A stretch of DNA of 64,000 nucleotides from NCBI GenBank assembly GCA_002269645.1, contig NIVC01000652.1:315295-379294 (forward strand), in the 5' to 3' direction. The stretch's first letter is position 1. Every line of letters begins with the position of its first letter. Under the pieces are notes generated by a model. That model did not search any database. It was not told where the DNA came from and worked only from the letters and a program-made list of their open reading frames with translations. Position numbers and translations under genes: made by a program. The DNA comes from Macrostomum lignano (Eukaryota). This document shows positions 31,014 to 64,000 of the stretch, one piece after another.

Positions 31014-31556
31014 TGGTCATGGACTATCAGTGTTTGGATTGGACTGGAAAGGTCTTGCAAGGACCGCTAGAAGTAGATAAACTAAACGCATAGTTTCTTA
31101 GAAAATAAGTGTTTTTGAAGGCCTGCTCTGTTTTGTGTGCTAAGGATTTTCAAAGTGAAATAATTTGTTTAAATTGAGATATTGAATACAATTGTGTGAG
31201 GAGGTACACGTCTAAGAAACCAAGTGTGGATGCCTTACTGCATCTGCTGGTTCTTGGAATTCGCAACAGAGGCACTGAAGCCCGATCGTGGCATGCGCCC
31301 GAGTCCCATCGCTCTCGATCATCTTCGTAGTGCATTTTTTCGGCCAAAATAATCGGCATTCAGATTGATTTGCCGTCAATTGTTGAAATACCGGCACCCG
31401 AGCTGCGCTTTTTGTAGTAACCTTTGATTTAATTGGTCCACTAGCCTATCGCCATTGCTATTCACCTTGATTAATTTTGCTTTTTTCACGATCATCAATT
31501 ATCCTCTTTGCAGTCATTGCTTGTTAATCTTGTGAGGTGTTTTCATTATTCCTCTA

Positions 31557-32645
31557 GGTGAGTTATCCCATCTCTGCCACAGTGAGTTATCCCATCTCTG
31601 CCACAGTGAATTATCCCATCTCTGCCACCGTGAGTTATCCCATCTCTGCCACAATGAGTTATCCCATCTCTGCCACACTGAGTTATCCCATCTCTGCCAC
31701 ACTGAGTTATCCCATCTCTGCCTCAGTGAGTTATCCCATCTCTGCCTCAGTGAGTTATCCCATCTCTGCCACACTGAGTTATCCCATCTCTGCCTCAGTG
31801 AGTTATCCCATCTCTGCCTCAGTGAGTTATCCCATCTCTGCCTCAGTGAGTTATCCCATCTCTGCCTCAGTGAGTTATCCCATCTCTGCCTCAGTGAGTT
31901 ATCCCATCTCTGCCACAGTGAGTTATCCCATCTCTGCCACAGTGAGTTATCCCATCTGTGCCACAGTGAGTTATCCTATCTCTGCCACAGTGAATTATCC
32001 CATCTCTGCCACAGTGAGTTATCCCATCTGTGCCACAGTGAGTTATCCCATCTCTGCCACAGTGAGTTATCCCATCTCTGCCACAGTGAGTTATCCCATC
32101 TGTGCCACAGTGAGTTATCCTATCTCTGCCACAGTGAATTATCCCATCTCTGCCACAGTGAGTTATCCCATCTGTGCCACAGTGAATTATCCCATCTCTG
32201 CCTCACTGAGTTATCCCATCTCTGCCTCACTGAGTTATCCCATCTCTGCCTCACTGAGTTATCCCAGCTCTGCCTCACTGAGTTATCCCATCTCTGCCAC
32301 AGTGAGTTATCCCATCTGTGCCACAGTGAGTTATCCCATCTCTGCCACAGTGAGTTATCCCATCTCTGCCACAGTGAGTTATCCCATCTGTGCCACAGTG
32401 AGTTATCCTATCTCTGCCACAGTGAATTATCCCATCTCTGCCACAGTGAGTTATCCCATCTGTGCCACAGTGAATTATCCCATCTCTGCCTCACTGAGTT
32501 ATCCCATCTCTGCCTCACTGAGTTATCCCATCTCTGCCTCACTGAGTTATCCCAGCTCTGCCTCACTGAGTTATCCCATCTCTGCCACAGTGAATTATCC
32601 CATCTCTGCCTCACTGAGTTATCCCATCTCTGCCTCACCGAGCCC
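31557..32645. repeat. 24-bp minisatellite, about 45 copies
   Basis: Unit GTGAGTTATCCCATCTCTGCCACA. Confidence 0.95.
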
Positions 32646-33464
32646 AATAATGACTGGCGATGAATTTTTGTCGTTAACAAATTGTCTTAAAATAACAAAT
32701 ATTTTATCTTTTTGCGCTTAATTTTTCCCATATTTTGCTTGAAGAGCAACAGCACCGCATCCCTTGCCCAGCATCACTAACGTCAGCCAGGAAATCCCGG
32801 TACTCCGCCATCATCACTTCTAGCTAGTTATTAGACGTTTTGCTATTTTTGAGCATTCTCATTTCAATCTTTCTGAGCATGTTGTTTCGTCTTTGAGCAG
32901 TCGCTTCTGTAATCGATTTTCTGTTCTAAAAATAGATTTCTGTTAGTCTGCAATCATTATGGCGCCACGATTCCCACTTTGATATGCTGTGTTTTCTTAG
33001 CGATTCGGTAGCTTAGCAGCGGTTGGACAAATTTTTGTTTTCAAATTTGACTGTTTGTCTTCCCTTTGACCTTTTTTGTTATAAGCCAGCAGATCGACCC
33101 GGTCTCTGGCTTTTTCAACGCTAATTTTAGTTGCCAGTTGCGATGGGAAAGGCGGGATTGGAATTGATTTTTTGTGCTTTAGAAACCGCGCGAGTCAAGT
33201 AGTGATTTAGTTTAACTAGCTATCGTATCTTTATTCGATACGAATTTTCAATTAGCTATAGATAAATATATATTTAACAACTGTCATCATATCTTTCGTT
33301 ATTAATAACTAATTCAATCGAATTGGACTTTATTTTAACTTTTCGAACTCCTAGCAAAATGGGGTCGCCAATTGTCCATTGAGAATCGTCTTTTATCCCT
33401 TGAAACTTTTGGCGTGAAAAATCGCTCATTTATTATCCCATGATAATCAACCCGTACGAGTATT

Positions 33465-34000
33465 CCATGAGAACCACCCTCTATCCCTATCCCATCAGGA
33501 TCACCCGTTATCCCATGAGAATCACCCGTTATCCCATGAGGAGCACCCCTTATCCCTTATCCCATAAGGATCACCCCTTATCCCTTATCCCATGAGAGTC
33601 ACGAATTACCCCATGAGCAACCCCCCTTACCCCATGAGCAACCCCCCTTACCCCATGAGCAACCCCCCTTATCCCATGAGAATCACCTGTTATCCCATGA
33701 GGAGCACCCCTTGTCCCATGAGAATCACCCCTTATACCATGAGAATCACCCCTTATACCATGAGGATCACCCATTATCCCATGAGAATCACCCCTTGTCC
33801 CATGAGAATCACCCCTTGTCCCATGAGAATCACCCCTTATACCATGAGAATCACCCTTATCCCTTATCCCATGAGAGTCACGAATTACCCCATGAGCAAC
33901 CTCCCTTACCCCATGAGCAACCCCCCCCCCTTACCCCATGAGCAACCCCCCCTTATCCCATGAGAATCACCCCTTGTCCCATGAGAATCACCCTTATCCC
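33465..34000. repeat. About 21-bp degenerate minisatellite upstream of MFSD9
   Basis: Unit CCCATGAGAATCACCCCTTAT and variants. Confidence 0.9.
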
Positions 34001-34051
34001 TTGACGATTGCCCGTAACGTTCGCCATTCGCCCACCGCCCCTCAACTTCAG

Positions 34052-34468
34052 GCCGGCTTATTTGTCGCTGAGCTGGCGCAATCTGACAGGCGGCAGTTTC
34101 TGCTGTGCCTGGCAGGCTTTGCGGTGAGTTCACTGCTCAAGTGCGCTGTAGCGTGGCTCATCGGCCTTATCTTACCTTTCATTTACTCATAATTTGCTCA
34201 GGACCTGTTCTGCGTCAGCATGGTCATCACCTGCCTGCCCATTCACCTGAAACAAATCGGCATGGCTCCGTTCTATATGGGATTGTTCCGTAAGCCAGTA
34301 AACTACTCGAATATTTTACTACTATCAGTAGTATTCGTGTTGCTTCAGTCTTAGTGAGACATTACTGGGAAATTTTGATTTTCCAGAGTCCGAGTACGGA
34401 GCTGTGCAGATTTTTTCAAGCTCGATTTGTGTGAGTTTTTTGTTGTGTACTGTCTGTCTGTCTGTCTA

Positions 34469-34505
<37 letters not shown>

Positions 34506-34542
34506 GCCTGTCTGTCTGTCTGTCTGACTGTCTGTCTGTCTG

Positions 34543-34629
<87 letters not shown>

Positions 34630-34632
34630 GAC

Positions 34633-34663
<31 letters not shown>

Positions 34664-34708
34664 GCCTGTCTGTCTGTCTGTCTGTCTGACTGTCTGTCTG
34701 TCTGTCTG

Positions 34709-34749
<41 letters not shown>

Positions 34750-34752
34750 GAC

Positions 34753-34783
<31 letters not shown>

Positions 34784-34812
34784 GTCTGTCTGACTGTCTG
34801 TCTGTCTGTCTG

Positions 34813-34849
<37 letters not shown>

Positions 34850-34852
34850 GAC

Positions 34853-34903
<51 letters not shown>

Positions 34904-36148
34904 GCCTGTCTGTCTGTCTGTCTGTCTGTGCCTGTCTGTCTGTCTGTCTGTGTCTGCTGGTTTCTCTTGAGTCTGTCAGTCTTGGTCTCAGTTTCCCATT
35001 CCCAGCCCAGCTCAGTTAGGCTTCCCAATTCGCGCCCTCCCTCCTCCCAGGGCCGCCTGGTTCGCCGGTTCGGCGCCCGCAACGCCCACAGCCTTTGCTG
35101 CGTGGCCTCCGCCGCGGGCTACCTGGCGTTGGGCCTCGGGCCGCCCGACTTCCCCAGCCTAGCCAGCCTCCGCCTCATCACGGCTCTGTTCAAGCACACC
35201 CAGACTCTGCAGCGGACGCAGCTCGCCTCGTCGCCTGACGTCAGCGAAAGTCGCTGGATCCGCCTGCTCGGCTCGCACTCGACGCTGTCCTCCCTCGGCT
35301 TCATCGTCGGGCCCATGGTCGGCGGGGTCGCCTTCGACTTTGGCGGCTTCCGCCTGGTGACCGGCCTCGCCTGCGTCGGCTTTTTGGCTGTCGGCATCGC
35401 GACCGCGGTGTCGGCAGCAGCGCCAGCTGCCGAGGTGGCGCCGAAGTCATCCGGTCGGAGTTCTAGGCCGACTCCGACCTCCTCGGCGCTGTCCGCTGCG
35501 CTGGCCGTGGCCGACCTGCTGGCGCTGCAGCTGCCGATGTCGCTGGCCGCTCAGCTGTTCCGGCACAACTTCGCCCTGGCGCTGAACTCGCGCTTCTCTG
35601 CCTCGTCCGCCGGCGCGGGCCTCGCCACCTCGCTGGGCGCCGTCTCCGGCCTGCTGTCCGGCCTGGCCGTCGGGCCGCTGCAGTCGGCCACTGGCCTCGG
35701 CCCCGACCGCCTGGTGCTGCTGGCAGCCGCCGGCCAGGCCGCCTGCCTCTCACTGGCCGCCTCGGGTCTCGTCACCAGCCTGGCGCAGTTCGCCGCCGCC
35801 CAGGCCCCGCTGAGCTTCTTCAACGGCCTGGCCAGGGACGCCTACCCGACCCTGCTGCGCTGCCGGCTTGTCAGCTCGTCCTTCGCCTGTCCCGAGGCCG
35901 CCCTGACCGACGCGATGGCCGCCTCGCAGTCGGTGAACTCCCTGGCCCGCCTGCTCGCTCCGCTGCTCGGCGGCTGCGTCGAAGCCGCGCTGCCCGGCCA
36001 CGAAGCTCCGAGCCAGCCAGCTGCAGCGCTGATCTCCGTCTGCCTGGCCTGCCCGCTGGCCGCCGCAGCTCCCGCGGTTAACTGGCTGCAGAGCCGGCGA
36101 GGACGGCTGGCCGCTGGCTGTCCGGATGCGGATCGGAAGTCGCGCTGA
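34052..36148 (+). CDS. MFSD9: Major facilitator superfamily transporter (MFSD9-like); start codon not present locally
   Basis: Exons 34052-34123, 34202-34289, 34387-34430 and 35051-36148 splice in frame: [12 protein letters not shown]|DLFCVSMV...GLF|[15 protein letters not shown]|[10 protein letters not shown]...LFKHT...[11 protein letters not shown]. This parallels the MFSD9 pattern GFLDLFGVSM / SYGILQLFSS / IFKHT / GFILGPVVGG as recalled. Confidence 0.8.
34450..34955. repeat. (CTGT)n microsatellite in MFSD9 intron 3
   Basis: Direct inspection. Confidence 0.95.
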
Positions 36149-36730: not shown

Positions 36731-36865
36731 TATTCACTGTAATACTGTTAAATGATGCTAAAACATTCTAAAGAATTTTGCCTAGCAATTTTTTTTCTGG
36801 AACCCAAGACAGTTGCATACTTGATAAAGAAGTACATTCTCAAGCACTCCCCGGACACTTCAGCC

Positions 36866-39800
36866 ATGTCTCAGCAGCCGCCGCAGATCAGCCAGCAGGC
36901 TGTGCTGATGCAGTCCGGCCAGCTGCCAGAAGACGTGGACACGCCGGTCAAGGGTCACGACTTCAATGCGCCTGACGGGCTGTCACTGGAAGCACTGATG
37001 AAATCATTTGCCACCACAGGCTTTCAGGTAAGTCTTCATGTTTACCTTTTCTGCTTATTTACCCTGTAGGTGCTGCAGTTCAGTAGTTAGATGCTGCAGA
37101 TCAGTAGTTAGATGCTGCAGATCAATAGTTAGATGCTGCAGTTCAGTAGTTAGATGCTGCAGATCAGTAGTTAGATGCTGCAGTTCAGTAGTTAGATGCT
37201 CCAGATCAGTAGTTAGATGCTGCAGTTCAGTAGTTAGATGCTGCAGATCAGTAGTTAGATGCTGCAGATCAGTAGTTAGATGCTGCAGATCTGTAAGAAC
37301 TGTAGATCAATTAGATTCGATAAAACAGTATAGAAGGAAACTTTAGATAGATCGTCAGTTGGATACTGTAGAAGATAAAGTAGATCAGCATTTAGATGCT
37401 GTATATATCTTCAGTTGCATATTGTAGATAGATCGGCAGTTAGATACCGTAGATCGGCAGTTAGATACAGTAGATCGGCAGTTAGATACTGTAGATCGGC
37501 AGTTAGATACTGTAGATAGATCGGCAGTTAGATACTGTAGATTGGCAGTTAGATACTGTAGATAGATCGGCAGTTAGATACTGTAGATTGGCAGTTAGAT
37601 ACTGTAAATAGATCGGCAGGTAGATACTGTAGATCGGCAGGTAGATACTGTAGATCGGCAGTTAGATACTGTAGATCGGCAGTTAGATACTGTAGATTGG
37701 CAGTTAGATACTGTAAATAGATCGGCAGGTAGATACTGTAGATCGGCAGGTAGATACTGTAGATCGGCAGTTAGATACTGTAGATCGGCAGTTAGATACT
37801 GTAGATAGATCGGCAGTTAGATACCGTAGATCGGCAGGTAGATACTGTAGATCGGCAGTTAGATACTGTAGATAGATCGGCAGTTAGATACTGTAAATAG
37901 ATCGGCAGGTAGATACTGTAGATCAGCAGGTAGATACTGTAGATCGGCAGGTAGATACTGTAGATCGGCAGTTAGATACTGTAGATAGATCGGCAGTTAG
38001 ATACCGTAGATCGGCAGGTAGATACTGTAGATCGGCAGGTAGATACTGTAGATCGGCAGTTAGATACTGTAGTTTGGCAGTTAGATACTGTAAATAGATC
38101 GGCAGGTAGATACTGTAGATCAGCAGGTAGATACTGTAGATCGGCAGGTAGATACTGTAGATCGGCAGGTAGATACTGTAGATAGATCGGCAGTTAGATA
38201 CTGTAGAGTGGCAGTTAGATACTGTAGATAGATCGGCAGTTAGATACTGTAGATAGATCGGCAGTTAGATACTGTAGATTGGCAGTTAGATACTGTAAAT
38301 AGATCGGCAGGTAGATACTGTAGATCGGCAGGTAGATACGGTTGATTCACCCCGCAGGGCACCAACCTGTCGCTGGCCATAGACGAAATCAACCGAATGC
38401 TCGACTGCAAGTTCGCCAAGCCGGAGGAAGCCGCGGGTGCCGCAACCGCCAATGGAGACTTGGAGGTGTCCAACCCGAATCCATACGGCCGGGCCCGCAC
38501 GAACTGCACCATATTCTTGGCCTTCACGTCCAACATGATCTCCAGCGGCGTGCGCGAGTCAATTCGCTACCTGGTCGAGCACAACCTGGTTGACGTGCTC
38601 GTCACCACCGGCGGCGCCGTGGAGGAGGACCTCATCAAGTGCATGCACCCAACCTACATCGGCGACTTCCATCGCTGGCCGGGCGCGCAGCTGCGTCAGG
38701 CCGGCATCAACCGGATCGGCAACCTGCTGGTGCCGAACAAGAACTACTGCGCGTTCGAGTCGTGGCTGGTGCCCATCCTTGACGCCATGCTGGCTGAGCA
38801 GAATGAGCAGAAAATCAACTGGACTCCATCTAAGCTCATTCACCGCCTAGGCAGGTGGGGCTCTTCTTAACTGAGACTTGCGTGCGTTCCTGTCCTGAGT
38901 CCTCCATGCATTCCTGTCCTGAGTCCTTATGCATTCCTGTCCTGAGTCCTCCATGCATTCCTGTCCTGAGTCCGTTATGCATTCCTGTCCTGAGTCCGTT
39001 ATGCATTCCTGTCCTGAGTCCGTTATGCATTCCTGTCCTGAGTCCTTTATGCATTCCTGTCCTGAGTCCTCCATGCATTCCTGTCCTGAGTCCTCCATGC
39101 ATTCCTGTCCTGAGTCCGTTATGCATTCCTGTCCTGAGTCCGTTATGCATTCCTGTCCTGAGTCCGTTATGCATTCCTGTCCTGAGTCCTTTATGCATTC
39201 CTGTCCTGAGTCCTTTATGCATTCCTGTCCTGAGTCCTCCATGCATTCCTGTCCTGAGTCCTTCATGCATTCCTGTCCTGAGTCCTTTATGCATTCCTGT
39301 CCTGAGTCCTCCATGCATTCCTGTCCTGAGTCCTTCATGCATTCCTGTCCTGAGTCCTCCATGCATTCCTGTCCTGGGTCCTTTATGCATTCCTGTCCTG
39401 AGTCCTTTATGCATTCCTGTCCTGAGTCCTCCATGCATTCCTGTCCTGAGTCCGTTATGCATTCCTGTCCTGAGTCCGTTATGCATTCCTGTCCTGAGTC
39501 CGTTATGCATTCCTGTCCTGAGTCCTTTATGCATTCCTGTCCTGAGTCCTTTATGCATTCCTGTCCTGAGTCCGTTATGCATTCCTGTCCTGAGTCCTTT
39601 ATGCATTCCTGTCCTGAGTCCTTTATGCATTCCTGTCCTGAGTCCTCCATACATTCCTGTCCTGAGTCCTTTATGCATTCCTGTCCTGAGTCCTTTATGC
39701 ATTCCTGTCCTGAGTCCTCCATGCATTCCTGTCCTGAGTCCGTTATGCATTCCTGTCCTGAGTCCTTTATGCATTCCTGTCCTGAGTCCTCCATGCATTC

Positions 39801-41277
39801 CTGTCCTGAGTCCTCCATGCATTCCTGTCCTGAGTCCGTTATGCATTCCTGTCCTGAGTCCTTTATGTATTCCTGTCCTGAGTCCTTTATGCATTCCTGT
39901 GCTGAGTCCTTTATGCATTCCTGTCCTCTGATCTCTATTTATTTCTACCCCATGCGTGAGAATATTGATTGTCTCATGGGTGAGACTTTTGAGTGTGGGT
40001 GAGAATATTGTGTCTTATGGGTGAGCCTATTGATTGTCTCATGGGTGAGACTTTTGAGTGTGGGTGAGAATATTGTGTCTTATGGGTGAGCCTATTGATT
40101 GTCTCATGGGTGAGACTATTGAGTGGCTCATGGGTCAGACTATTGAGTGTCTCATGGGTGAGACTATTGATTGTCTTATGGGTGAGACTATTGAGTGTCT
40201 CATGGGTGAGACTAGTGAGCGACTCATGGGTGAGACTATTGAGTGTCTCATGGGTGAGACTTTTGAGTGTGGGTGAGAATATTGTGTCTTATGGGTGAGA
40301 CTATTGATTGTCTTATGGGTGAGACTATTGAGTGGCTCATGGGTCAGACTATTGAGTGTCTCATGGGTGAGACTATTGATTGTCTTATGGATGAGACTAT
40401 TGAGTGTCTCATGGGTGAGACTAATGAGTGACTCATGGGTGAGACTAATGAGTGACTCATGGGTGAGACTATTGAGTGACTCATGGGTGAGACTATTGAG
40501 TGACTCATGGGTGAGACTATTGAGTGACTCATGGGTGAGACTATTGAGTGACTCATGGGTGAGACTATTGAGTGACTCATGGGTGAGACTATTGAGTGAC
40601 TCATGGGTGAGACTATTAATTGACTCATGGGTGAGACTATTGAGTGTCTCATGGGTGAGACTAATGAGTGACTCATGGGTGAGACTAATGAGTGACTCAT
40701 GGGTGAGACTATTGAGTGACTCATGGGTGAGACTATTAATTGACTCATGGTGATTAGTGCTATCGAACTACTGTTTAAGTAGCCAAAACGCAAAATGTCA
40801 ATATATTCTTCCAGAGAGATCAACAACCCCGAGTCGGTGCTCTACTGGTGCCACCGAAACGGCATCCCTGTGTTCTGCCCTTCCATCACAGACGGCGCGT
40901 GCGGTGACGTGCTGTACTTTCACAGCTACCGCTGTCCCGGCCTCGTCCTGGACGCCATCGAGGACATCCGGCTGGTGAACAGCCAGGCGGTGTTCGCCCG
41001 CAACACCGGCATGATAGTTCTGGGCGGCGGGGTCGTGAAGCACCACACCTGCAATGCCAACCTCATGCGCAACGGGGCCAACTTTGCCGTGTTCGTCAAC
41101 ACCGGCCAGGAGTTCGATGGCAGCGACTCCGGCGCCAGGCCCGACGAGGCCGTCAGCTGGGGCAAAATCCGGCTGGACGCGCGGCCTGTGAAGGTCTACT
41201 CGGACGCCACGCTGGCCTTCCCGCTCATCGTGGCGCAGACCTTCGCTAAGCGGCTGGCTGGCAGGGCAGACAAATGA
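36866..41277 (+). CDS. DHPS: Deoxyhypusine synthase, 373 aa, 3 exons
   Basis: Exons 36866-37027, 38358-38854 and 40815-41277 (1122 nt, in frame). Motifs TTGFQ|[37 protein letters not shown]|[38 protein letters not shown] (catalytic Lys). Confidence 0.97.
37071..38340. repeat. 21/25-bp minisatellites in DHPS intron 1
   Basis: GATGCTGCAGATCAGTAGTTA-type units grading into GTAGATCGGCAGTTAGATACT-type units. Confidence 0.93.
38888..39927. repeat. 24-bp minisatellite in DHPS intron 2 (5' part)
   Basis: Unit ATGCATTCCTGTCCTGAGTCCTTT/CTCC/CGTT. Confidence 0.95.
39950..40752. repeat. 24-bp hairpin-unit minisatellite in DHPS intron 2 (3' part)
   Basis: Unit GGTGAGACTATTGAGTGTCTCATG. Confidence 0.95.
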
Positions 41278-52206: not shown

Positions 52207-55200
52207 CATAACATTTATATTTTGTGAGTGTCGGGGTGAACTCGGGGCACTCGTCGCATATGCTCATACCAGATCGATATGACAAATTGTTCTCCAAGTT
52301 GCACTGTATGCATTCGGTAGCCCGCTGAATACTGGATCGCGTGCCAGGGGGGCAGGGCGTGCAGGTGCTACTACCAGTTTTGTTCGTGAAGTAGCCAGGG
52401 AAACAATCAAAGCATTTGTCTGAACCAGGGCTTGGCGCGTATTGCCCTACCCGGCAAAGACTGCAACGCGTAGAGCCAGGCTCCTCAGCCACGCTGCCAG
52501 GGGGCACATCGTGCAGCTAGAGGTGCCCTCCCGATCTGCAAAATGCCCCCCGAACATTGAATGCAGTGCCTTGATCCAGCAGGCGAAAAATGACCCTTGG
52601 GGCACAAGCGGCAGGACAAAGCACCCGAACGGCTCCAGCTGCCTGCATTGCATAACTCGCACAAAGAGGCACCGCTATGGCCGCTGTATCTGCCAGGCGA
52701 CAAGGTTTGCACTCACTTGAGCCGTTAGAATTAGCAAAAGTTCCAGAGAACATCGCCTGCAAGAAGAAGATCCAGCAGACGAGGAAAATGATCCAGGGAT
52801 GCAGGCAGTACACGCACTTGAACCAAGTCCACTCCAGGTGCCTACGGGACAAGGATTATAGGAGGTCGAACCGACTCCATTTATAAAATAGCCAGCAGGA
52901 CTAGGGGTGCATTCTATTGAATTCAAAGTCGAAGAAAAATATCCAGCAGGACACTTGGTGCATTCCTTGGACCCTTCTTGTTGGCGAAGCTACCCGTGGA
53001 CACTTAGTGCAGGCGCTTAACCCGGCTCGGTCAGCAATGCTTCCTGCCGGGCACTGGGTGCATGCCGAAGAGCCGACAGTTAGATTGTTCCAGGCTCGCA
53101 GTTCGTACACGCGGCCGCGCCTTTACCGCTCCACGTGCCTGCAGGACACGGTTTAGCGCTTGTCGAGCCAGTCTTGTCGACGAATGATCCCGGTGGACTC
53201 GGTGTACACTTGCTAGATCCGGCGATCGCAAACGTTCCCGCCTTGCACTTGGTCGGCTCGGAGGCGCCGTTGGTACACACGCTTCCAGCAGGACACTTGG
53301 TGCATTCCTTGGACCCCTTCTTGTTGGCGAAGCTACCCGGTGGACACTTAGTGCAGGCGCTTAACCCGGCTCGGTCAGCAATGCTTCCTGCCGGGCACTG
53401 GGTGCATGCCGAAGAGCCGACAGTTGAGATTGTTCCAGGCTCGCAGTTCGTACACGCGGCCGCGCCTTTACCGCTCCACGTGCCTGCAGGACACGGTTTA
53501 GCGCTTGTCGAGCCAGTCTTGTCGACGAATGATCCCGGTGGACTCGGTGTACACTTGCTAGATCCGGCGATCGCAAACGTTCCCGCCTTGCACTTGGTCG
53601 GCTCGGAGGCGCCGTTGGTACACACGCTTCCAGCAGGACACTTGGTGCATTCCTTGGACCCCTTCTTGTTGGCGAAGCTACCCGGTGGACACTTAGTGCA
53701 GGCGCTTAACCCGGCTCGGTCAGCAATGCTTCCTGCCGGGCACTGGGTGCATGCCGAAGAGCCGACAGTTGAGATTGTTCCAGGCTCGCAGTTCGTACAC
53801 GCGGCCGCGCCTTTACCGCTCCACGTGCCTGCAGGACACGGTTTAGCGCTTGTCGAGCCAGTCTTGTCGACGAATGATCCCGGTGGACTCGGTGTACACT
53901 TGCTAGATCCGGCGATCGCAAACGTTCCCGCCTTGCACTTGGTCGGCTCGGAGGCGCCGTTGGTACACACGCTTCCAGCAGGACACTTGGTGCATTCCTT
54001 GGACCCCTTCTTGTTGGCGAAGCTACCCGGTGGACACTTAGTGCAGGCGCTTAACCCGGCTCGTCAGCAATGCTTCCTGCCGGGCACTGGGTGCATGCCG
54101 AAGAGCCGACAGTTGAGATTGTTCCAGGCTCGCAGTTCGTACACGCGGCCGCGCCTTTACCGCTCCACGTGCCTGCAGGACACGGTTTAGCGCTTGTCGA
54201 GCCAGTCTTGTCGACGAATGATCCCGGTGGACTCGGTGTACACTTGCTAGATCCGGCGATCGCAAACGTTCCCGCCTTGCACTTGGTCGGCTCGGAGGCG
54301 CCGTTGGTACACACGCTTCCAGCAGGACACTTGGTGCATTCCTTGGACCCCTTCTTGTTGGCGAAGCTACCCGGTGGACACTTAGTGCAGGCGCTTAACC
54401 CGGCTCGGTCAGCAATGCTTCCTGCCGGGCACTGGGTGCATGCCGAAGAGCCGACAGTTGAGATTGTTCCAGGCTCGCAGTTCGTACACGCGGCCGCGCC
54501 TTTACCGCTCCACGTGCCTGCAGGACACGGTTTAGCGCTTGTCGAGCCAGTCTTGTCGACGAATGATCCCGGTGGACTCGGTGTACACTTGCTAGATCCG
54601 GCGATCGCAAACGTTCCCGCCTTGCACTTGGTCGGCTCGGAGGCGCCGTTGGTACACACGCTTCCAGCAGGACACTTGGTGCATTCCTTGGACCCCTTCT
54701 TGTTGGCGAAGCTACCCGGTGGACACTTAGTGCAGGCGCTTAACCCGGCTCGGTCAGCAATGCTTCCTGCCGGGCACTGGGTGCATGCCGAAGAGCCGAC
54801 AGTTGAGATTGTTCCAGGCTCGCAGTTCGTACACGCGGCCGCGCCTTTACCGCTCCACGTGCCTGCAGGACACGGTTTAGCGCTTGTCGAGCCAGTCTTG
54901 TCGACGAATGATCCCGGTGGACTCGGTGTACACTTGCTAGATCCGGCGATCGCAAACGTTCCCGCCTTGCACTTGGTCGGCTCGGAGGCGCCGTTGGTAC
55001 ACACGCTTCCAGCAGGACACTTGGTGCATTCCTTGGACCCCTTCTTGTTGGCGAAGCTACCCGGTGGACACTTAGTGCAGGCGCTTAACCCGGCTCGGTC
55101 AGCAATGCTTCCTGCCGGGCACTGGGTGCATGCCGAAGAGCCGACAGTTGAGATTGTTCCAGGCTCGCAGTTCGTACACGCGGCCGCGCCTTTACCGCTC

Positions 55201-58200
55201 CACGTGCCTGCAGGACACGGTTTAGCGCTTGTCGAGCCAGTCTTGTCGACGAATGATCCCGGTGGACTCGGTGTACACTTGCTAGATCCGGCGATCGCAA
55301 ACGTTCCCGCCTTGCACTTGGTCGGCTCGGAGGCGCCGTTGGTACACACGCTTCCAGCAGGACACTTGGTGCATTCCTTGGACCCCTTCTTGTTGGCGAA
55401 GCTACCCGGTGGACACTTAGTGCAGGCGCTTAACCCGGCTCGGTCAGCAATGCTTCCTGCCGGGCACTGGGTGCATGCCGAAGAGCCGACAGTTGAGATT
55501 GTTCCAGGCTCGCAGTTCGTACACGCGGCCGCGCCTTTACCGCTCCACGTGCCTGCAGGACACGGTTTAGCGCTTGTCGAGCCAGTCTTGTCGACGAATG
55601 ATCCCGGTGGACTCGGTGTACACTTGCTAGATCCGGCGATCGCAAACGTTCCCGCCTTGCACTTGGTCGGCTCGGAGGCGCCGTTGGTACACACGCTTCC
55701 AGCAGGACACTTGGTGCATTCCTTGGACCCCTTCTTGTTGGCGAAGCTACCCGGTGGACACTTAGTGCAGGCGCTTAACCCGGCTCGGTCAGCAATGCTT
55801 CCTGCCGGGCACTGGGTGCATGCCGAAGAGCCGACAGTTGAGATTGTTCCAGGCTCGCAGTTCGTACACGCGGCCGCGCCTTTACCGCTCCACGTGCCTG
55901 CAGGACACGGTTTAGCGCTTGTCGAGCCAGTCTTGTCGACGAATGATCCCGGTGGACTCGGTGTACACTTGCTAGATCCGGCGATCGCAAACGTTCCCGC
56001 CTTGCACTTGGTCGGCTCGGAGGCGCCGTGGTACACACGCTTCCAGCAGGACACTTGGTGCATTCCTTGGACCCCTTCTTGTTGGCGAAGCTACCCGGTG
56101 GACACTTAGTGCAGGCGCTTAACCCGGCTCGGTCAGCAATGCTTCCTGCCGGGCACTGGGTGCATGCCGAAGAGCCGACAGTTGAGATTGTTCCAGGCTC
56201 GCAGTTCGTACACGCGGCCGCGCCTTTACCGCTCCACGTGCCTGCAGGACACGGTTTAGCGCTTGTCGAGCCAGTCTTGTCGACGAATGATCCCGGTGGA
56301 CTCGGTGTACACTTGCTAGATCCGGCGATCGCAAACGTTCCCGCCTTGCACTTGGTCGGCTCGGAGGCGCCGTTGGTACACACGCTTCCAGCAGGACACT
56401 TGGTGCATTCCTTGGACCCCTTCTTGTTGGCGAAGCTACCCGGTGGACACTTAGTGCAGGCGCTTAACCCGGCTCGGTCAGCAATGCTTCCTGCCGGGCA
56501 CTGGGTGCATGCCGAAGAGCCGACAGTTGAGATTGTTCCAGGCTCGCAGTTCGTACACGCGGCCGCGCCTTTACCGCTCCACGTGCCTGCAGGACACGGT
56601 TTAGCGCTTGTCGAGCCAGTCTTGTCGACGAATGATCCCGGTGGACTCGGTGTACACTTGCTAGATCCGGCGATCGCAAACGTTCCCGCCTTGCACTTGG
56701 TCGGCTCGGAGGCGCCGTTGGTACACACGCTTCCAGCAGGACACTTGGTGCATTCCTTGGACCCCTTCTTGTTGGCGAAGCTACCCGGTGGACACTTAGT
56801 GCAGGCGCTTAACCCGGCTCGGTCAGCAATGCTTCCTGCCGGGCACTGGGTGCATGCCGAAGAGCCGACAGTTGAGATTGTTCCAGGCTCGCAGTTCGTA
56901 CACGCGGCCGCGCCTTTACCGCTCCACGTGCCTGCAGGACACGGTTTAGCGCTTGTCGAGCCAGTCTTGTCGACGAATGATCCCGGTGGACTCGGTGTAC
57001 ACTTGCTAGATCCGGCGATCGCAAACGTTCCCGCCTTGCACTTGGTCGGCTCGGAGGCGCCGTTGGTACACACGCTTCCAGCAGGACACTTGGTGCATTC
57101 CTTGGACCCCTTCTTGTTGGCGAAGCTACCCGGTGGACACTTAGTGCAGGCGCTTAACCCGGCTCGGTCAGCAATGCTTCCTGCCGGGCACTGGGTGCAT
57201 GCCGAAGAGCCGACAGTTGAGATTGTTCCAGGCTCGCAGTTCGTACACGCGGCCGCGCCTTTACCGCTCCACGTGCCTGCAGGACACGGTTTAGCGCTTG
57301 TCGAGCCAGTCTTGTCGACGAATGATCCCGGTGGACTCGGTGTACACTTGCTAGATCCGGCGATCGCAAACGTTCCCGCCTTGCACTTGGTCGGCTCGGA
57401 GGCGCCGTTGGTACACACGCTTCCAGCAGGACACTTGGTGCATTCCTTGGACCCCTTCTTGTTGGCGAAGCTACCCGGTGGACACTTAGTGCAGGCGCTT
57501 AACCCGGCTCGGTCAGCAATGCTTCCTGCCGGGCACTGGGTGCATGCCGAAGAGCCGACAGTTGAGATTGTTCCAGGCTCGCAGTTCGTACACGCGGCCG
57601 CGCCTTTACCGCTCCACGTGCCTGCAGGACACGGTTTAGCGCTTGTCGAGCCAGTCTTGTCGACGAATGATCCCGGTGGACTCGGTGTACACTTGCTAGA
57701 TCCGGCGATCGCAAACGTTCCCGCCTTGCACTTGGTCGGCTCGGAGGCGCCGTTGGTACACACGCTTCCAGCAGGACACTTGGTGCATTCCTTGGACCCC
57801 TTCTTGTTGGCGAAGCTACCCGGTGGACACTTAGTGCAGGCGCTTAACCGGCTCGGTCAGCAATGCTTCCTGCCGGGCACTGGGTGCATGCCGAAGAGCC
57901 GACAGTTGAGATTGTTCCAGGCTCGCAGTTCGTACACGCGGCCGCGCCTTTACCGCTCCACGTGCCTGCAGGACACGGTTTAGCGCTTGTCGAGCCAGTC
58001 TTGTCGACGAATGATCCCGGTGGACTCGGTGTACACTTGCTAGATCCGGCGATCGCAAACGTTCCCGCCTTGCACTTGGTCGGCTCGGAGGCGCCGTTGG
58101 TACACACGCTTCCAGCAGGACACTTGGTGCATTCCTTGGACCCCTTCTTGTTGGCGAAGCTACCCGGTGGACACTTAGTGCAGGCGCTTAACCCGGCTCG

Positions 58201-61200
58201 GTCAGCAATGCTTCCTGCCGGGCACTGGGTGCATGCCGAAGAGCCGACAGTTGAGATTGTTCCAGGCTCGCAGTTCGTACACGCGGCCGCGCCTTTACCG
58301 CTCCACGTGCCTGCAGGACACGGTTTAGCGCTTGTCGAGCCAGTCTTGTCGACGAATGATCCCGGTGGACTCGGTGTACACTTGCTAGATCCGGCGATCG
58401 CAAACGTTCCCGCCTTGCACTTGGTCGGCTCGGAGGCGCCGTTGGTACACACGCTTCCAGCAGGACACTTGGTGCATTCCTTGGACCCCTTCTTGTTGGC
58501 GAAGCTACCCGGTGGACACTTAGTGCAGGCGCTTAACCCGGCTCGGTCAGCAATGCTTCCTGCCGGGCACTGGGTGCATGCCGAAGAGCCGACAGTTGAG
58601 ATTGTTCCAGGCTCGCAGTTCGTACACGCGGCCGCGCCTTTACCGCTCCACGTGCCTGCAGGACACGGTTTAGCGCTTGTCGAGCCAGTCTTGTCGACGA
58701 ATGATCCCGGTGGACTCGGTGTACACTTGCTAGATCCGGCGATCGCAAACGTTCCCGCCTTGCACTTGGTCGGCTCGGAGGCGCCGTTGGTACACACGCT
58801 TCCAGCAGGACACTTGGTGCATTCCTTGGACCCCTTCTTGTTGGCGAAGCTACCCGGTGGACACTTAGTGCAGGCGCTTAACCCGGCTCGGTCAGCAATG
58901 CTTCCTGCCGGGCACTGGGTGCATGCCGAAGAGCCGACAGTTGAGATTGTTCCAGGCTCGCAGTTCGTACACGCGGCCGCGCCTTTACCGCTCCACGTGC
59001 CTGCAGGACACGGTTTAGCGCTTGTCGAGCCAGTCTTGTCGACGAATGATCCCGGTGGACTCGGTGTACACTTGCTAGATCCGGCGATCGCAAACGTTCC
59101 CGCCTTGCACTTGGTCGGCTCGGAGGCGCCGTTGGTACACACGCTTCCAGCAGGACACTTGGTGCATTCCTTGGACCCCTTCTTGTTGGCGAAGCTACCC
59201 GGTGGACACTTAGTGCAGGCGCTTAACCCGGCTCGGTCAGCAATGCTTCCTGCCGGGCACTGGGTGCATGCCGAAGAGCCGACAGTTGAGATTGTTCCAG
59301 GCTCGCAGTTCGTACACGCGGCCGCGCCTTTACCGCTCCACGTGCCTGCAGGACACGGTTTAGCGCTTGTCGAGCCAGTCTTGTCGACGAATGATCCCGG
59401 TGGACTCGGTGTACACTTGCTAGATCCGGCGATCGCAAACGTTCCCGCCTTGCACTTGGTCGGCTCGGAGGCGCCGTTGGTACACACGCTTCCAGCAGGA
59501 CACTTGGTGCATTCCTTGGACCCCTTCTTGTTGGCGAAGCTACCCGGTGGACACTTAGTGCAGGCGCTTAACCCGGCTCGGTCAGCAATGCTTCCTGCCG
59601 GGCACTGGGTGCATGCCGAAGAGCCGACAGTTGAGATTGTTCCAGGCTCGCAGTTCGTACACGCGGCCGCGCCTTTACCGCTCCACGTGCCTGCAGGACA
59701 CGGTTTAGCGCTTGTCGAGCCAGTCTTGTCGACGAATGATCCCGGTGGACTCGGTGTACACTTGCTAGATCCGGCGATCGCAAACGTTCCCGCCTTGCAC
59801 TTGGTCGGCTCGGAGGCGCCGTTGGTACACACGCTTCCAGCAGGACACTTGGTGCATTCCTTGGACCCCTTCTTGTTGGCGAAGCTACCCGGTGGACACT
59901 TAGTGCAGGCGCTTAACCCGGCTCGGTCAGCAATGCTTCCTGCCGGGCACTGGGTGCATGCCGAAGAGCCGACAGTTGAGATTGTTCCAGGCTCGCAGTT
60001 CGTACACGCGGCCGCGCCTTTACCGCTCCACGTGCCTGCAGGACACGGTTTAGCGCTTGTCGAGCCAGTCTTGTCGACGAATGATCCCGGTGGACTCGGT
60101 GTACACTTGCTAGATCCGGCGATCGCAAACGTTCCCGCCTTGCACTTGGTCGGCTCGGAGGCGCCGTTGGTACACACGCTTCCAGCAGGACACTTGGTGC
60201 ATTCCTTGGACCCCTTCTTGTTGGCGAAGCTACCCGGTGGACACTTAGTGCAGGCGCTTAACCCGGCTCGGTCAGCAATGCTTCCTGCCGGGCACTGGGT
60301 GCATGCCGAAGAGCCGACAGTTGAGATTGTTCCAGGCTCGCAGTTCGTACACGCGGCCGCGCCTTTACCGCTCCACGTGCCTGCAGGACACGGTTTAGCG
60401 CTTGTCGAGCCAGTCTTGTCGACGAATGATCCCGGTGGACTCGGTGTACACTTGCTAGATCCGGCGATCGCAAACGTTCCCGCCTTGCACTTGGTCGGCT
60501 CGGAGGCGCCGTTGGTACACACGCTTCCAGCAGGACACTTGGTGCATTCCTTGGACCCCTTCTTGTTGGCGAAGCTACCCGGTGGACACTTAGTGCAGGC
60601 GCTTAACCCGGCTCGGTCAGCAATGCTTCCTGCCGGGCACTGGGTGCATGCCGAAGAGCCGACAGTTGAGATTGTTCCAGGCTCGCAGTTCGTACACGCG
60701 GCCGCGCCTTTACCGCTCCACGTGCCTGCAGGACACGGTTTAGCGCTTGTCGAGCCAGTCTTGTCGACGAATGATCCCGGTGGACTCGGTGTACACTTGC
60801 TAGATCCGGCGATCGCAAACGTTCCCGCCTTGCACTTGGTCGGCTCGGAGGCGCCGTTGGTACACACGCTTCCAGCAGGACACTTGGTGCATTCCTTGGA
60901 CCCCTTCTTGTTGGCGAAGCTACCCGGTGGACACTTAGTGCAGGCGCTTAACCCGGCTCGGTCAGCAATGCTTCCTGCCGGGCACTGGGTGCATGCCGAA
61001 GAGCCGACAGTTGAGATTGTTCCAGGCTCGCAGTTCGTACACGCGGCCGCGCCTTTACCGCTCCACGTGCCTGCAGGACACGGTTTAGCGCTTGTCGAGC
61101 CAGTCTTGTCGACGAATGATCCCGGTGGACTCGGTGTACACTTGCTAGATCCGGCGATCGCAAACGTTCCCGCCTTGCACTTGGTCGGCTCGGAGGCGCC

Positions 61201-64000
61201 GTTGGTACACACGCTTCCAGCAGGACACTTGGTGCATTCCTTGGACCCCTTCTTGTTGGCGAAGCTACCCGGTGGACACTTAGTGCAGGCGCTTAACCCG
61301 GCTCGGTCAGCAATGCTTCCTGCCGGGCACTGGGTGCATGCCGAAGAGCCGACAGTTGAGATTGTTCCAGGCTCGCAGTTCGTACACGCGGCCGCGCCTT
61401 TACCGCTCCACGTGCCTGCAGGACACGGTTTAGCGCTTGTCGAGCCAGTCTTGTCGACGAATGATCCCGGTGGACTCGGTGTACACTTGCTAGATCCGGC
61501 GATCGCAAACGTTCCCGCCTTGCACTTGGTCGGCTCGGAGGCGCCGTTGGTACACACGCTTCCAGCAGGACACTTGGTGCATTCCTTGGACCCCTTCTTG
61601 TTGGCGAAGCTACCCGGTGGACACTTAGTGCAGGCGCTTAACCCGGCTCGGTCAGCAATGCTTCCTGCCGGGCACTGGGTGCATGCCGAAGAGCCGACAG
61701 TTGAGATTGTTCCAGGCTCGCAGTTCGTACACGCGGCCGCGCCTTTACCGCTCCACGTGCCTGCAGGACACGGTTTAGCGCTTGTCGAGCCAGTCTTGTC
61801 GACGAATGATCCCGGTGGACTCGGTGTACACTTGCTAGATCCGGCGATCGCAAACGTTCCCGCCTTGCACTTGGTCGGCTCGGAGGCGCCGTTGGTACAC
61901 ACGCTTCCAGCAGGACACTTGGTGCATTCCTTGGACCCCTTCTTGTTGGCGAAGCTACCCGGTGGACACTTAGTGCAGGCGCTTAACCCGGCTCGGTCAG
62001 CAATGCTTCCTGCCGGGCACTGGGTGCATGCCGAAGAGCCGACAGTTGAGATTGTTCCAGGCTCGCAGTTCGTACACGCGGCCGCGCCTTTACCGCTCCA
62101 CGTGCCTGCAGGACACGGTTTAGCGCTTGTCGAGCCAGTCTTGTCGACGAATGATCCCGGTGGACTCGGTGTACACTTGCTAGATCCGGCGATCGCAAAC
62201 GTTCCCGCCTTGCACTTGGTCGGCTCGGAGGCGCCGTTGGTACACACGCTTCCAGCAGGACACTTGGTGCATTCCTTGGACCCCTTCTTGTTGGCGAAGC
62301 TACCCGGTGGACACTTAGTGCAGGCGCTTAACCCGGCTCGGTCAGCAATGCTTCCTGCCGGGCACTGGGTGCATGCCGAAGAGCCGACAGTTGAGATTGT
62401 TCCAGGCTCGCAGTTCGTACACGCGGCCGCGCCTTTACCGCTCCACACGTGCCTGCAGGACACGGTTTAGCGCTTGTCGAGCCAGTCTTGTCGACGAATG
62501 ATCCCGGTGGACTCGGTGTACACTTGCTAGATCCGGCGATCGCAAACGTTCCCGCCTTGCACTTGGTCGGCTCGGAGGCGCCGTTGGTACACACGCTTCC
62601 AGCAGGACACTTGGTGCATTCCTTGGACCCCTTCTTGTTGGCGAAGCTACCGGTGGACACTTAGTGCAGGCGCTTAACCCGGCTCGGTCAGCAATGCTTC
62701 CTGCCGGGCACTGGGTGCATGCCGAAGAGCCGACAGTTGAGATTGTTCCAGGCTCGCAGTTCGTACACGCGGCCGCGCCTTTACCGCTCCACGTGCCTGC
62801 AGGACACGGTTTAGCGCTTGTCGAGCCAGTCTTGTCGACGAATGATCCCGGTGGACTCGGTGTACACTTGCTAGATCCGGCGATCGCAAACGTTCCCGCC
62901 TTGCACTTGGTCGGCTCGGAGGCGCCGTTGGTACACACGCTTCCAGCAGGACACTTGGTGCATTCCTTGGACCCCTTCTTGTTGGCGAAGCTACCCGGTG
63001 GACACTTAGTGCAGGCGCTTAACCCGGTCGGTCAGCAATGCTTCCTGCCGGGCACTGGGTGCATGCCGAAGAGCCGACAGTTGAGATTGTTCCAGGCTCG
63101 CAGTTCGTACACGCGGCCGCGCCTTTACCGCTCCACGTGCCTGCAGGACACGGTTTAGCGCTTGTCGAGCCAGTCTTGTCGACGAATGATCCCGGTGGAC
63201 TCGGTGTACACTTGCTAGATCCGGCGATCGCAAACGTTCCCGCCTTGCACTTGGTCGGCTCGGAGGCGCCGTTGGTACACACGCTTCCAGCAGGACACTT
63301 GGTGCATTCCTTGGACCCCTTCTTGTTGGCGAAGCTACCCGGTGGACACTTAGTGCAGGCGCTTAACCCGGCTCGGTCAGCAATGCTTCCTGCCGGGCAC
63401 TGGGTGCATGCCGAAGAGCCGACAGTTGAGATTGTTCCAGGCTCGCAGTTCGTACACGCGGCCGCGCCTTTACCGCTCCACGTGCCTGCAGGACACGGTT
63501 TAGCGCTTGTCGAGCCAGTCTTGTCGACGAATGATCCCGGTGGACTCGGTGTACACTTGCTAGATCCGGCGATCGCAAACGTTCCCGCCTTGCACTTGGT
63601 CGGCTCGGAGGCGCCGTTGGTACACACGCTTCCAGCAGGACACTTGGTGCATTCCTTGGACCCCTTCTTGTTGGCGAAGCTACCCGGTGGACACTTAGTG
63701 CAGGCGCTTAACCCGGCTCGGTCAGCAATGCTTCCTGCGGGCACTGGGTGCATGCCGTTATGCCACTCGTGCTGTAAGAGCTGAATGTTCCTGGGTTGCA
63801 GACAATGCAGTTTTGATTTCCTTCTTGGTATTTGTAGCTTCCAGCAGGGCATGGCACGCAGAGGTTACTTGTTGTCACGCTTTTTTTGATGGCCTACGGG
63901 ACACCTTGGTATACAGTCATATCTTTGGCTACCTTTTTTATCATCAAAGTTGGTGATTTGATTTTGACGTTGCGACACTCTTTGCAGGCCATACTGTCGT
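52207..64000 (-). CDS. Giant exon of a cysteine-rich repeat protein (CxxC-x-P/A-G repeats, ephrin-receptor-like/GCC2-GCC3 type); starts outside the window; scattered 1-2-bp indels
   Basis: Minus-strand frames encode continuous C-x2-C-x-(P/A)G modules through the array and through unique flanking sequence on both sides (NLCVPCPAGSYKYQEG at about 63800-63860; CSLCRVGQY...CDECPEF at 52210-52500). The exon ends at a TATG|GTGAGC donor at 52206. Confidence 0.8.
52943..63755 (-). repeat. 345-bp coding tandem repeat, about 31 copies (115 aa each)
   Basis: ORF-track period of 345 bp; 12 Cys and 7 internal sub-modules per unit. Confidence 0.97.

Follow-up and report, generated by a model that had tools for sequence, protein, structure and literature searches.

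Where does translation of the MFSD9-like gene of the flatworm Macrostomum lignano begin? MFSD9 (major facilitator superfamily domain-containing 9) is an orphan metazoan transporter of the MFS class. The gene considered here lies on contig NIVC01000652.1, on the forward strand of the window, by which we mean the whole 64,000-nucleotide stretch of DNA that was analysed. The question arises at its 5' end, where the first conserved exon follows directly on a splice acceptor and carries no methionine codon of its own. The first-pass annotation of this DNA had proposed that the initiator codon is instead supplied in trans, by the AUG at the end of the spliced leader (SL). We examined the gene, its acceptor, its paralogous copies and its annotated 5' ends, and weighed this proposal against four other explanations.

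Structure and identity of the gene

The features of the locus are collected in Table 1. Spliced across four exons, the gene model encodes an open reading frame (ORF) of 433 amino acids, or 434 if the SL contributes a methionine, and this ORF is 100% identical to GenBank entry PAA79120.1 ('BOX15_Mlig033358g11, partial', Macrostomum lignano). The N-terminal tail comes from exon 1, as does the first half of transmembrane helix 1 (TM1). The Pfam profile MFS_1 (PF07690) is matched over its full length by residues 18-372 of the protein (E = 8e-15); its match sets in within exon 1 and supports this exon as coding. An exhaustive phmmer search returned, as top non-self matches, proteins named MFSD9 or MFSD9-like from Branchiostoma, mammals, Ptychodera, a barnacle, a crinoid and a sponge; across Metazoa, these best matches have 31-37% identity, with E values down to 1e-32. 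Because the best non-self relatives carry this name, the label MFSD9 is a reasonable one for the M. lignano gene, orthology being judged from the forward search; the earlier identification of the gene therefore holds.

Like MFSD9 proteins, the M. lignano protein has MFS_1 across its length, and it has the TM1 pattern LxGFxDLFxVSM in common with them; unlike them, it has a degenerate form (LVRRFGAR) of the motif-A sequence WSDxxGRR. Motif A, canonically G-x-x-x-D-x-x-G-R-R between TM2 and TM3, marks the MFS superfamily and not MFSD9 in particular. The M. lignano protein departs from this canonical form: at residues about 69-80 (window 35051-35080), the Asp and one Arg are replaced relative to the GxWSDxxGRR of the orthologues. 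These replacements hint that gating or function of the M. lignano transporter may be altered.

Table 1. Features of the locus. Positions are those of the window; a slash marks a splice junction; offsets are in nucleotides from the acceptor.
Feature	Position	Strand	Remarks
Five consecutive same-strand genes	24577-46049	+	Alba-like, GBE1, MFSD9, DHPS, unnamed 279-aa gene
Alba-like gene, annotated start			+1 from CAG acceptor
GBE1, annotated start			+1 in one copy, 0 in another
21-bp minisatellite	33488-34004	+	~23.5 units, consensus TATCCCATGAGAATCACCCCT; in presumed outron
ATG 33938	33938-33940	+	Sole upstream ATG in frame with exon 1; repeat-derived
Pyrimidine tract and acceptor CTTCAG (34046-34051)	33985-34051	+	Presumed SL trans-splice acceptor
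MFSD9 exon 1	34052-34123	+	72 nt, 24 codons, phase 0, ends at donor /gtgagt
MFSD9 exon 2	34202-34289	+	Holds first genomic in-frame ATG, 34220
MFSD9 exon 3	34387-34430	+	Junctions backed by 100% match to PAA79120.1
MFSD9 intron 3	34431-35050	+	Mostly CTGT microsatellite (502 bp)
MFSD9 exon 4	35051-36148	+	Closes with stop codon TGA
DHPS acceptor and start, CTTCAG/CC ATG	36858-36868	+	Deoxyhypusine synthase, next gene downstream
Fifth gene, annotated start			0 in one copy, +9 in another, same TTGCAG acceptor

No genomic start codon ahead of TM1

The acceptor before exon 1 reads ...cctcaacttcag/GCCGGCTTA, with its AG at 34050-34051, and exon 1, which begins in phase 0, contains no ATG. The first in-frame ATG in the genome, at 34220 (MVITC...), falls in the middle of TM1 and would be Met32 of an SL-initiated protein. 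Upstream of it lie G23, F24 and D26, which the alignment shows to be invariant or nearly so in MFSD9 orthologues, so translation must start within or before exon 1. The M. lignano MFSD9 gene thus has no genomic start codon before its conserved TM1, and the acceptor, the phase and the missing methionine are all as the first-pass annotation described them.

Upstream of exon 1 the reading frame stays open back to 33917, and the sole in-frame ATG in that interval is at 33938, within a minisatellite. We scanned positions 31014-34040, an interval bounded by the stop codon of the upstream gene (31013) and by 34040, for an upstream ATG exon with a phase-0 GT[AG]AG donor. The scan gave only units of a 24-bp minisatellite, all of them beginning at one and the same ATG, 31654. 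We rejected these candidates as mere repeat units, and the earlier statement that no convincing upstream coding exon is to be found is borne out over this interval. By chance, phase 0 would be expected in one case in three, and ~5% of points would have a [TC]TNCAG motif no more than 25 nt away; no single feature of the site is rare, and it is their combination with the annotation evidence that is coherent.

The acceptor and the spliced leader

M. lignano has a single SL of 35 nt, CGGTCTCTTACTGCGAAGACTCAATTTATTGCATG, which ends in ...TTATTGCATG, that is, in ATG, and its trans-splice acceptors are enriched for the motif [T/C]TNCAG (PMC8629364). Trans-splicing affects roughly 30-39% of the genes of this species. 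The MFSD9 acceptor, CTTCAG, fits the published motif and is preceded by a 66-nt stretch that is ~70% pyrimidine and free of AG. The SL holds only one ATG, its last three bases, and this AUG is in frame with exon 1 (ATG/GCC GGC TTA...), from which the frame runs on into TM1 with no stop. The expectation, first drawn from flatworms in general, that the SL would end in an AUG usable as an initiator thus applies to the leader of this species.

With the SL methionine in place, M. lignano MFSD9 begins at the alignment column where the MFSD9-like proteins of Branchiostoma and the crinoid begin. In the remaining invertebrate sequences of the alignment, TM1 is preceded by 8-16 residues; the exception is the sponge Oscarella lobularis, which has a longer tail. 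The SL-joined N-terminus had been called sensible in size, and its length does match that of the invertebrate orthologues. The context of the SL AUG, with U at -3, is suboptimal and counts against initiation there. The 64-kb window was searched for Rfam RNAs and for a gene encoding SL RNA, and none was found.

Paralogous copies and the upstream minisatellite

The locus is present in three copies in M. lignano, one in the window and two elsewhere (L001 and L002), with the order GBE1 - MFSD9 - DHPS in all of them. All three MFSD9 copies have intact ORFs with a pN/pS of ~0.2 and, judging from these sequences, are under purifying selection. The copies do not differ in the acceptor, in exon 1 or in the stretch 33985-34051, but this conservation says little because the copies are 95-100% identical around the site, with 0-2 differences per 100 nt nearby. 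The sole informative contrast near the acceptor is the 21-bp minisatellite, which differs among the copies in unit number and in phase; the regions compared were 5737-5991 of L002 and 33917-34051 of the window.

The minisatellite contains ~20 ATGs, all but one of which are out of frame or soon terminated. The context of the remaining one, ATG 33938, is weak (ccccATGa), and a start there would extend the protein by 38 residues of repeat origin. It is found in L001 and not in L002, where 85 in-frame codons are open upstream with no Met among them. Since L002 is intact and constrained without this ATG, that copy appears to be functional without it, and we therefore regard ATG 33938 as an accident of repeat phase. 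The first-pass annotation had noted both the in-frame ATG of the minisatellite and the repeat-derived N-terminus that it would give; both observations were verified, and to them can now be added that the codon is not conserved among the paralogues.

The three copies are not related in a simple way along their length. The minisatellite upstream of the L001 gene resembles that of the window, and L001 shares protein substitutions (IDMAP, RRIRLL and FLTVGI) with L002. This mosaic suggests that recombination or gene conversion may have taken place between the duplicated copies.

Annotated 5' ends

The Mlig_3_7 annotation was made from RNA-seq; peaks of SL-trimmed reads set the points where transcripts were cut, and TransDecoder was used to call ORFs. 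In GenBank, each of the three MFSD9 copies has a 5'-partial model from this annotation; the models set in 9, 9 and 12 nt past the acceptor, with FVAELAQ (+9 nt) or VAELAQ (+12 nt). None of the three has an upstream exon or reaches the minisatellite. In UniProt and WormBase, three independent models (A0A1I8I1F4, A0A1I8FQD5 and A0A1I8FEC2) start with QLQAGLF and no Met at window position 34043, exactly 9 nt upstream of the acceptor. These starts would also fit dispersed transcription start sites (TSSs), and together with the +9/+12 ends they leave room for such sites in the acceptor region.

The neighbouring same-strand genes provide a measure of how such offsets should be read. In the annotation, each of them opens with the first in-frame codon past its own CAG acceptor, at a distance of 0-9 nt; DHPS has its ATG 2 nt past CTTCAG. 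In some cases the distance differs between copies of the same gene (Table 1), which indicates that shifts of up to ~10 nt are annotation noise at real acceptor boundaries. The 5' ends of MFSD9 behave like those of its neighbours. We rejected the 'partial' flag as evidence in its own right of a missing ATG, since neighbours that have an ATG are also 5'-partial: GBE1 and the fifth gene are annotated from the acceptor, each with its own ATG a few codons in. Among the five genes of the run, MFSD9 is the only one without an ATG of its own.

When we searched protein libraries of 5.8 billion and 1.8 billion entries for MAGLF... or the SL-derived N-terminus, only genome-based M. lignano models were found. 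For the gene ID Mlig033358, no mention was found in the literature or in searchable supplements.

Probable initiation at the SL AUG and its alternatives

We propose that the MFSD9 pre-mRNA is trans-spliced at CTTCAG/G (exon start 34052, at about 349346 on the contig) to the 35-nt SL. The predicted mRNA junction would be SL-ATG/GCCGGCTTATTTGTC, or in longer form TTTATTGCATG/GCCGGCTTATTTGTCGCTGAG. Trans-splicing would discard an outron full of minisatellite upstream AUGs (uATGs in the DNA) and would place the 3'-terminal AUG of the SL ahead of every other AUG in the mRNA, at a distance of 32 nt from the cap and in the reading frame of exon 1. Initiation by scanning ribosomes would then occur at this AUG and yield the 434-aa protein. 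We infer SL addition at 34052 and actual use of the SL AUG from the 5'-partial RNA-seq-based models, the acceptor motif and the reading frame. On this evidence, the start codon of M. lignano MFSD9 is probably the AUG of the trans-spliced SL and, in a claim that we make with slightly less assurance, all three copies appear to depend obligately on SL trans-splicing for their initiator codon. The original proposal of SL-AUG initiation is thus strengthened by the fit of the motif, by the frame of the AUG and by the lack of conservation of ATG 33938; its remaining element, trans-splicing at this very site, is drawn from the 5'-partial models.

Two of the alternatives concern how the 5' end of the mRNA is formed. 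If there were no trans-splicing, dispersed TSSs at ~34040-34065 would yield mRNAs that are translated from AUG 34220 or from a near-cognate in-frame CUG at 34073. Such an arrangement would account for the scatter of annotated 5' ends, which runs from -9 (UniProt) to +9/+12 (GenBank) with none exactly at the acceptor, and for two UniProt models that begin at MVITC. We nevertheless consider it unlikely: a protein begun at 34220 would lack the first half of TM1, and with it the conserved G-F-x-D; precisely where the dispersed TSSs would have to lie, there is an acceptor that matches the motif and has an AG-free pyrimidine tract; a neighbouring gene likewise has an offset of +9 from its acceptor in one copy but of 0 in the other; and trans-splicing affects the share of M. 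lignano genes given above. An ATG could also come from a short upstream exon outside the annotated model, cis-spliced to the acceptor at 34052. Flatworm acceptors often serve both cis- and trans-splicing, and because MFSD9 N-termini are unconserved, a tiny first exon would be invisible to homology. However, such an exon appears in none of the three RNA-seq-guided models, and in the interval from the upstream gene to the acceptor, the only phase-0 candidates of the form ATG...GT[AG]AG are units of the 24-bp minisatellite, which makes this source of the ATG, in our judgement, quite improbable.

The other two alternatives concern whether ATG 33938 is used and whether the gene is translated at all. 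Unspliced read-through transcripts could begin in the minisatellite and be translated from ATG 33938, with a 38-residue repeat-derived extension, a start permitted by the open frame that joins this codon to exon 1 in the window copy and in L001. L002 is intact and constrained in all other respects, yet has no such codon in frame; no annotated transcript reaches so far upstream, a TSS beyond 33938 would bring in ~20 uATGs, and the protein would have 54 residues before TM1 compared with 8-16 in most of the invertebrate orthologues aligned. A start at 33938 is accordingly very unlikely. We give even less credence to the idea that the MFSD9 copies are decaying, untranslated pseudogenes in which the lack of an ATG is meaningless. 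In this protein another residue stands in place of the motif-A Asp of MFS transporters, and every database model of M. lignano MFSD9 is flagged as partial or fragment, as might be expected of decay; yet each of the three copies retains an ORF of 430-433 codons with canonical splice sites and the low pN/pS ratio reported above, and the copies are covered by RNA-seq-based models.

Gene neighbourhood

Across the run of five genes to which MFSD9 belongs, annotated CDS starts lie 0-12 nt past CAG acceptors, and the gene order is kept in the paralogous loci. The run looks like a set of SL trans-spliced genes that are possibly operonic. The acceptor and start of DHPS lie 715 nt past the MFSD9 stop codon, which suggests an operon-like arrangement of these two genes. 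On the other side, the spacer between GBE1 (glycogen branching enzyme) and MFSD9 measures 3038 nt, or ~1.4 kb after removal of tandem repeats. In M. lignano, SL operons have been defined as trans-spliced genes on the same strand with a repeat-adjusted spacer of <1 kb (Ustyantsev and Berezikov 2021). One UniProt model, A0A1I8F5Y1, fuses MFSD9 and DHPS.

The consequences of SL addition would differ among the neighbours. At the DHPS acceptor it would give AUGCCAUG, in which the SL AUG is out of frame and opens a 15-codon overlapping uORF, so that translation of DHPS would need leaky scanning. The Alba-like gene and GBE1 would likewise receive an out-of-frame SL AUG; the fifth gene would receive one in frame, 6 codons before its own ATG.

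Tandem repeats are prominent throughout the window. The 24-bp minisatellite at 31558-32634 consists of 45 units, each with a consensus donor GTGAGT and ending in CACAG, which gives this spacer dozens of cryptic donor/acceptor pairs. Introns and spacers contain many further minisatellites, for example the arrays at 37067-38346 and 38883-40750. On the minus strand, a 345-bp tandem array at 52942-63757 (31.4 copies, 99% identity) encodes Cys-rich Ephrin_rec_like/TNFR-like repeats (PF07699, E = 1e-40), each unit corresponding to 115 aa. The array represents either a repeat protein that expanded very recently or a collapse or expansion in the assembly.

Relation to known systems

The use of the terminal AUG of a flatworm SL as initiator methionine was described by Cheng, Cohen, Ndegwa and Davis (2006, J Biol Chem 281:733), as cited in PMC9851317. 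According to the same account of that study, 28% of the trans-spliced mRNAs of Schistosoma mansoni have the SL AUG in frame, and more than 40 cDNAs depend on it; PMC9851317 names ORFs that begin in this way 'slORFs'. For Macrostomum, a passage in Wiberg et al. treats the SL ATG as a likely start codon. Given the work of Cheng et al. 2006 and the Macrostomum precedent, the mechanism has been known since 2006, and MFSD9 is a likely new example of it and not a new phenomenon.

What the case would add lies elsewhere. If true, it would provide a concrete instance of SL-AUG initiation in a free-living flatworm of the early-branching Macrostomorpha. It would mean that initiation at the SL AUG is of ancient origin in Platyhelminthes, and would imply that many 'partial' M. 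lignano CDSs are actually complete. Confirmation would explain both the three 'partial' CDSs in GenBank and the UniProt models that are fragments or start inside TM1. It would also extend a mechanism of parasitic flatworms to a free-living regeneration model and would mean that the expression of one transporter gene is strictly tied to trans-splicing. The case reveals no new mechanism; its use is mainly in annotation correction, for which it would supply a repair rule for Macrostomum: where a CDS opens at a phase-0 acceptor, the SL methionine is to be prepended.

As in the mRNAs of Cheng et al. 2006, the SL ends in AUG, the acceptor lies in phase 0 at the start of the CDS, and the gene has no AUG of its own before the conserved protein; the lack of an encoded start codon also distinguishes it from MFSD9 as otherwise known. 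The cases of the Cheng et al. 2006 type come from parasitic flatworms (Schistosoma and Echinococcus) and rest on cDNA and reporter evidence, whereas MFSD9 would be a case from a free-living macrostomorph, known from genomic anatomy and annotation boundaries alone. With the trans-spliced genes and the operons described from M. lignano (Wudarski 2017; Ustyantsev and Berezikov 2021), MFSD9 shares the [T/C]TNCAG acceptor, the repeat-rich spacers and a place among five consecutive genes on one strand that have CAG acceptors adjoining their annotated 5' ends. Those two studies did not analyse use of the SL AUG, which is the point at issue in MFSD9, and, with a repeat-subtracted spacer of ~1.4 kb upstream, MFSD9 is at most a candidate member of an operon in the sense of Ustyantsev and Berezikov 2021. 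Together, these comparisons indicate that M. lignano MFSD9 is likely a further example of SL-AUG initiation.
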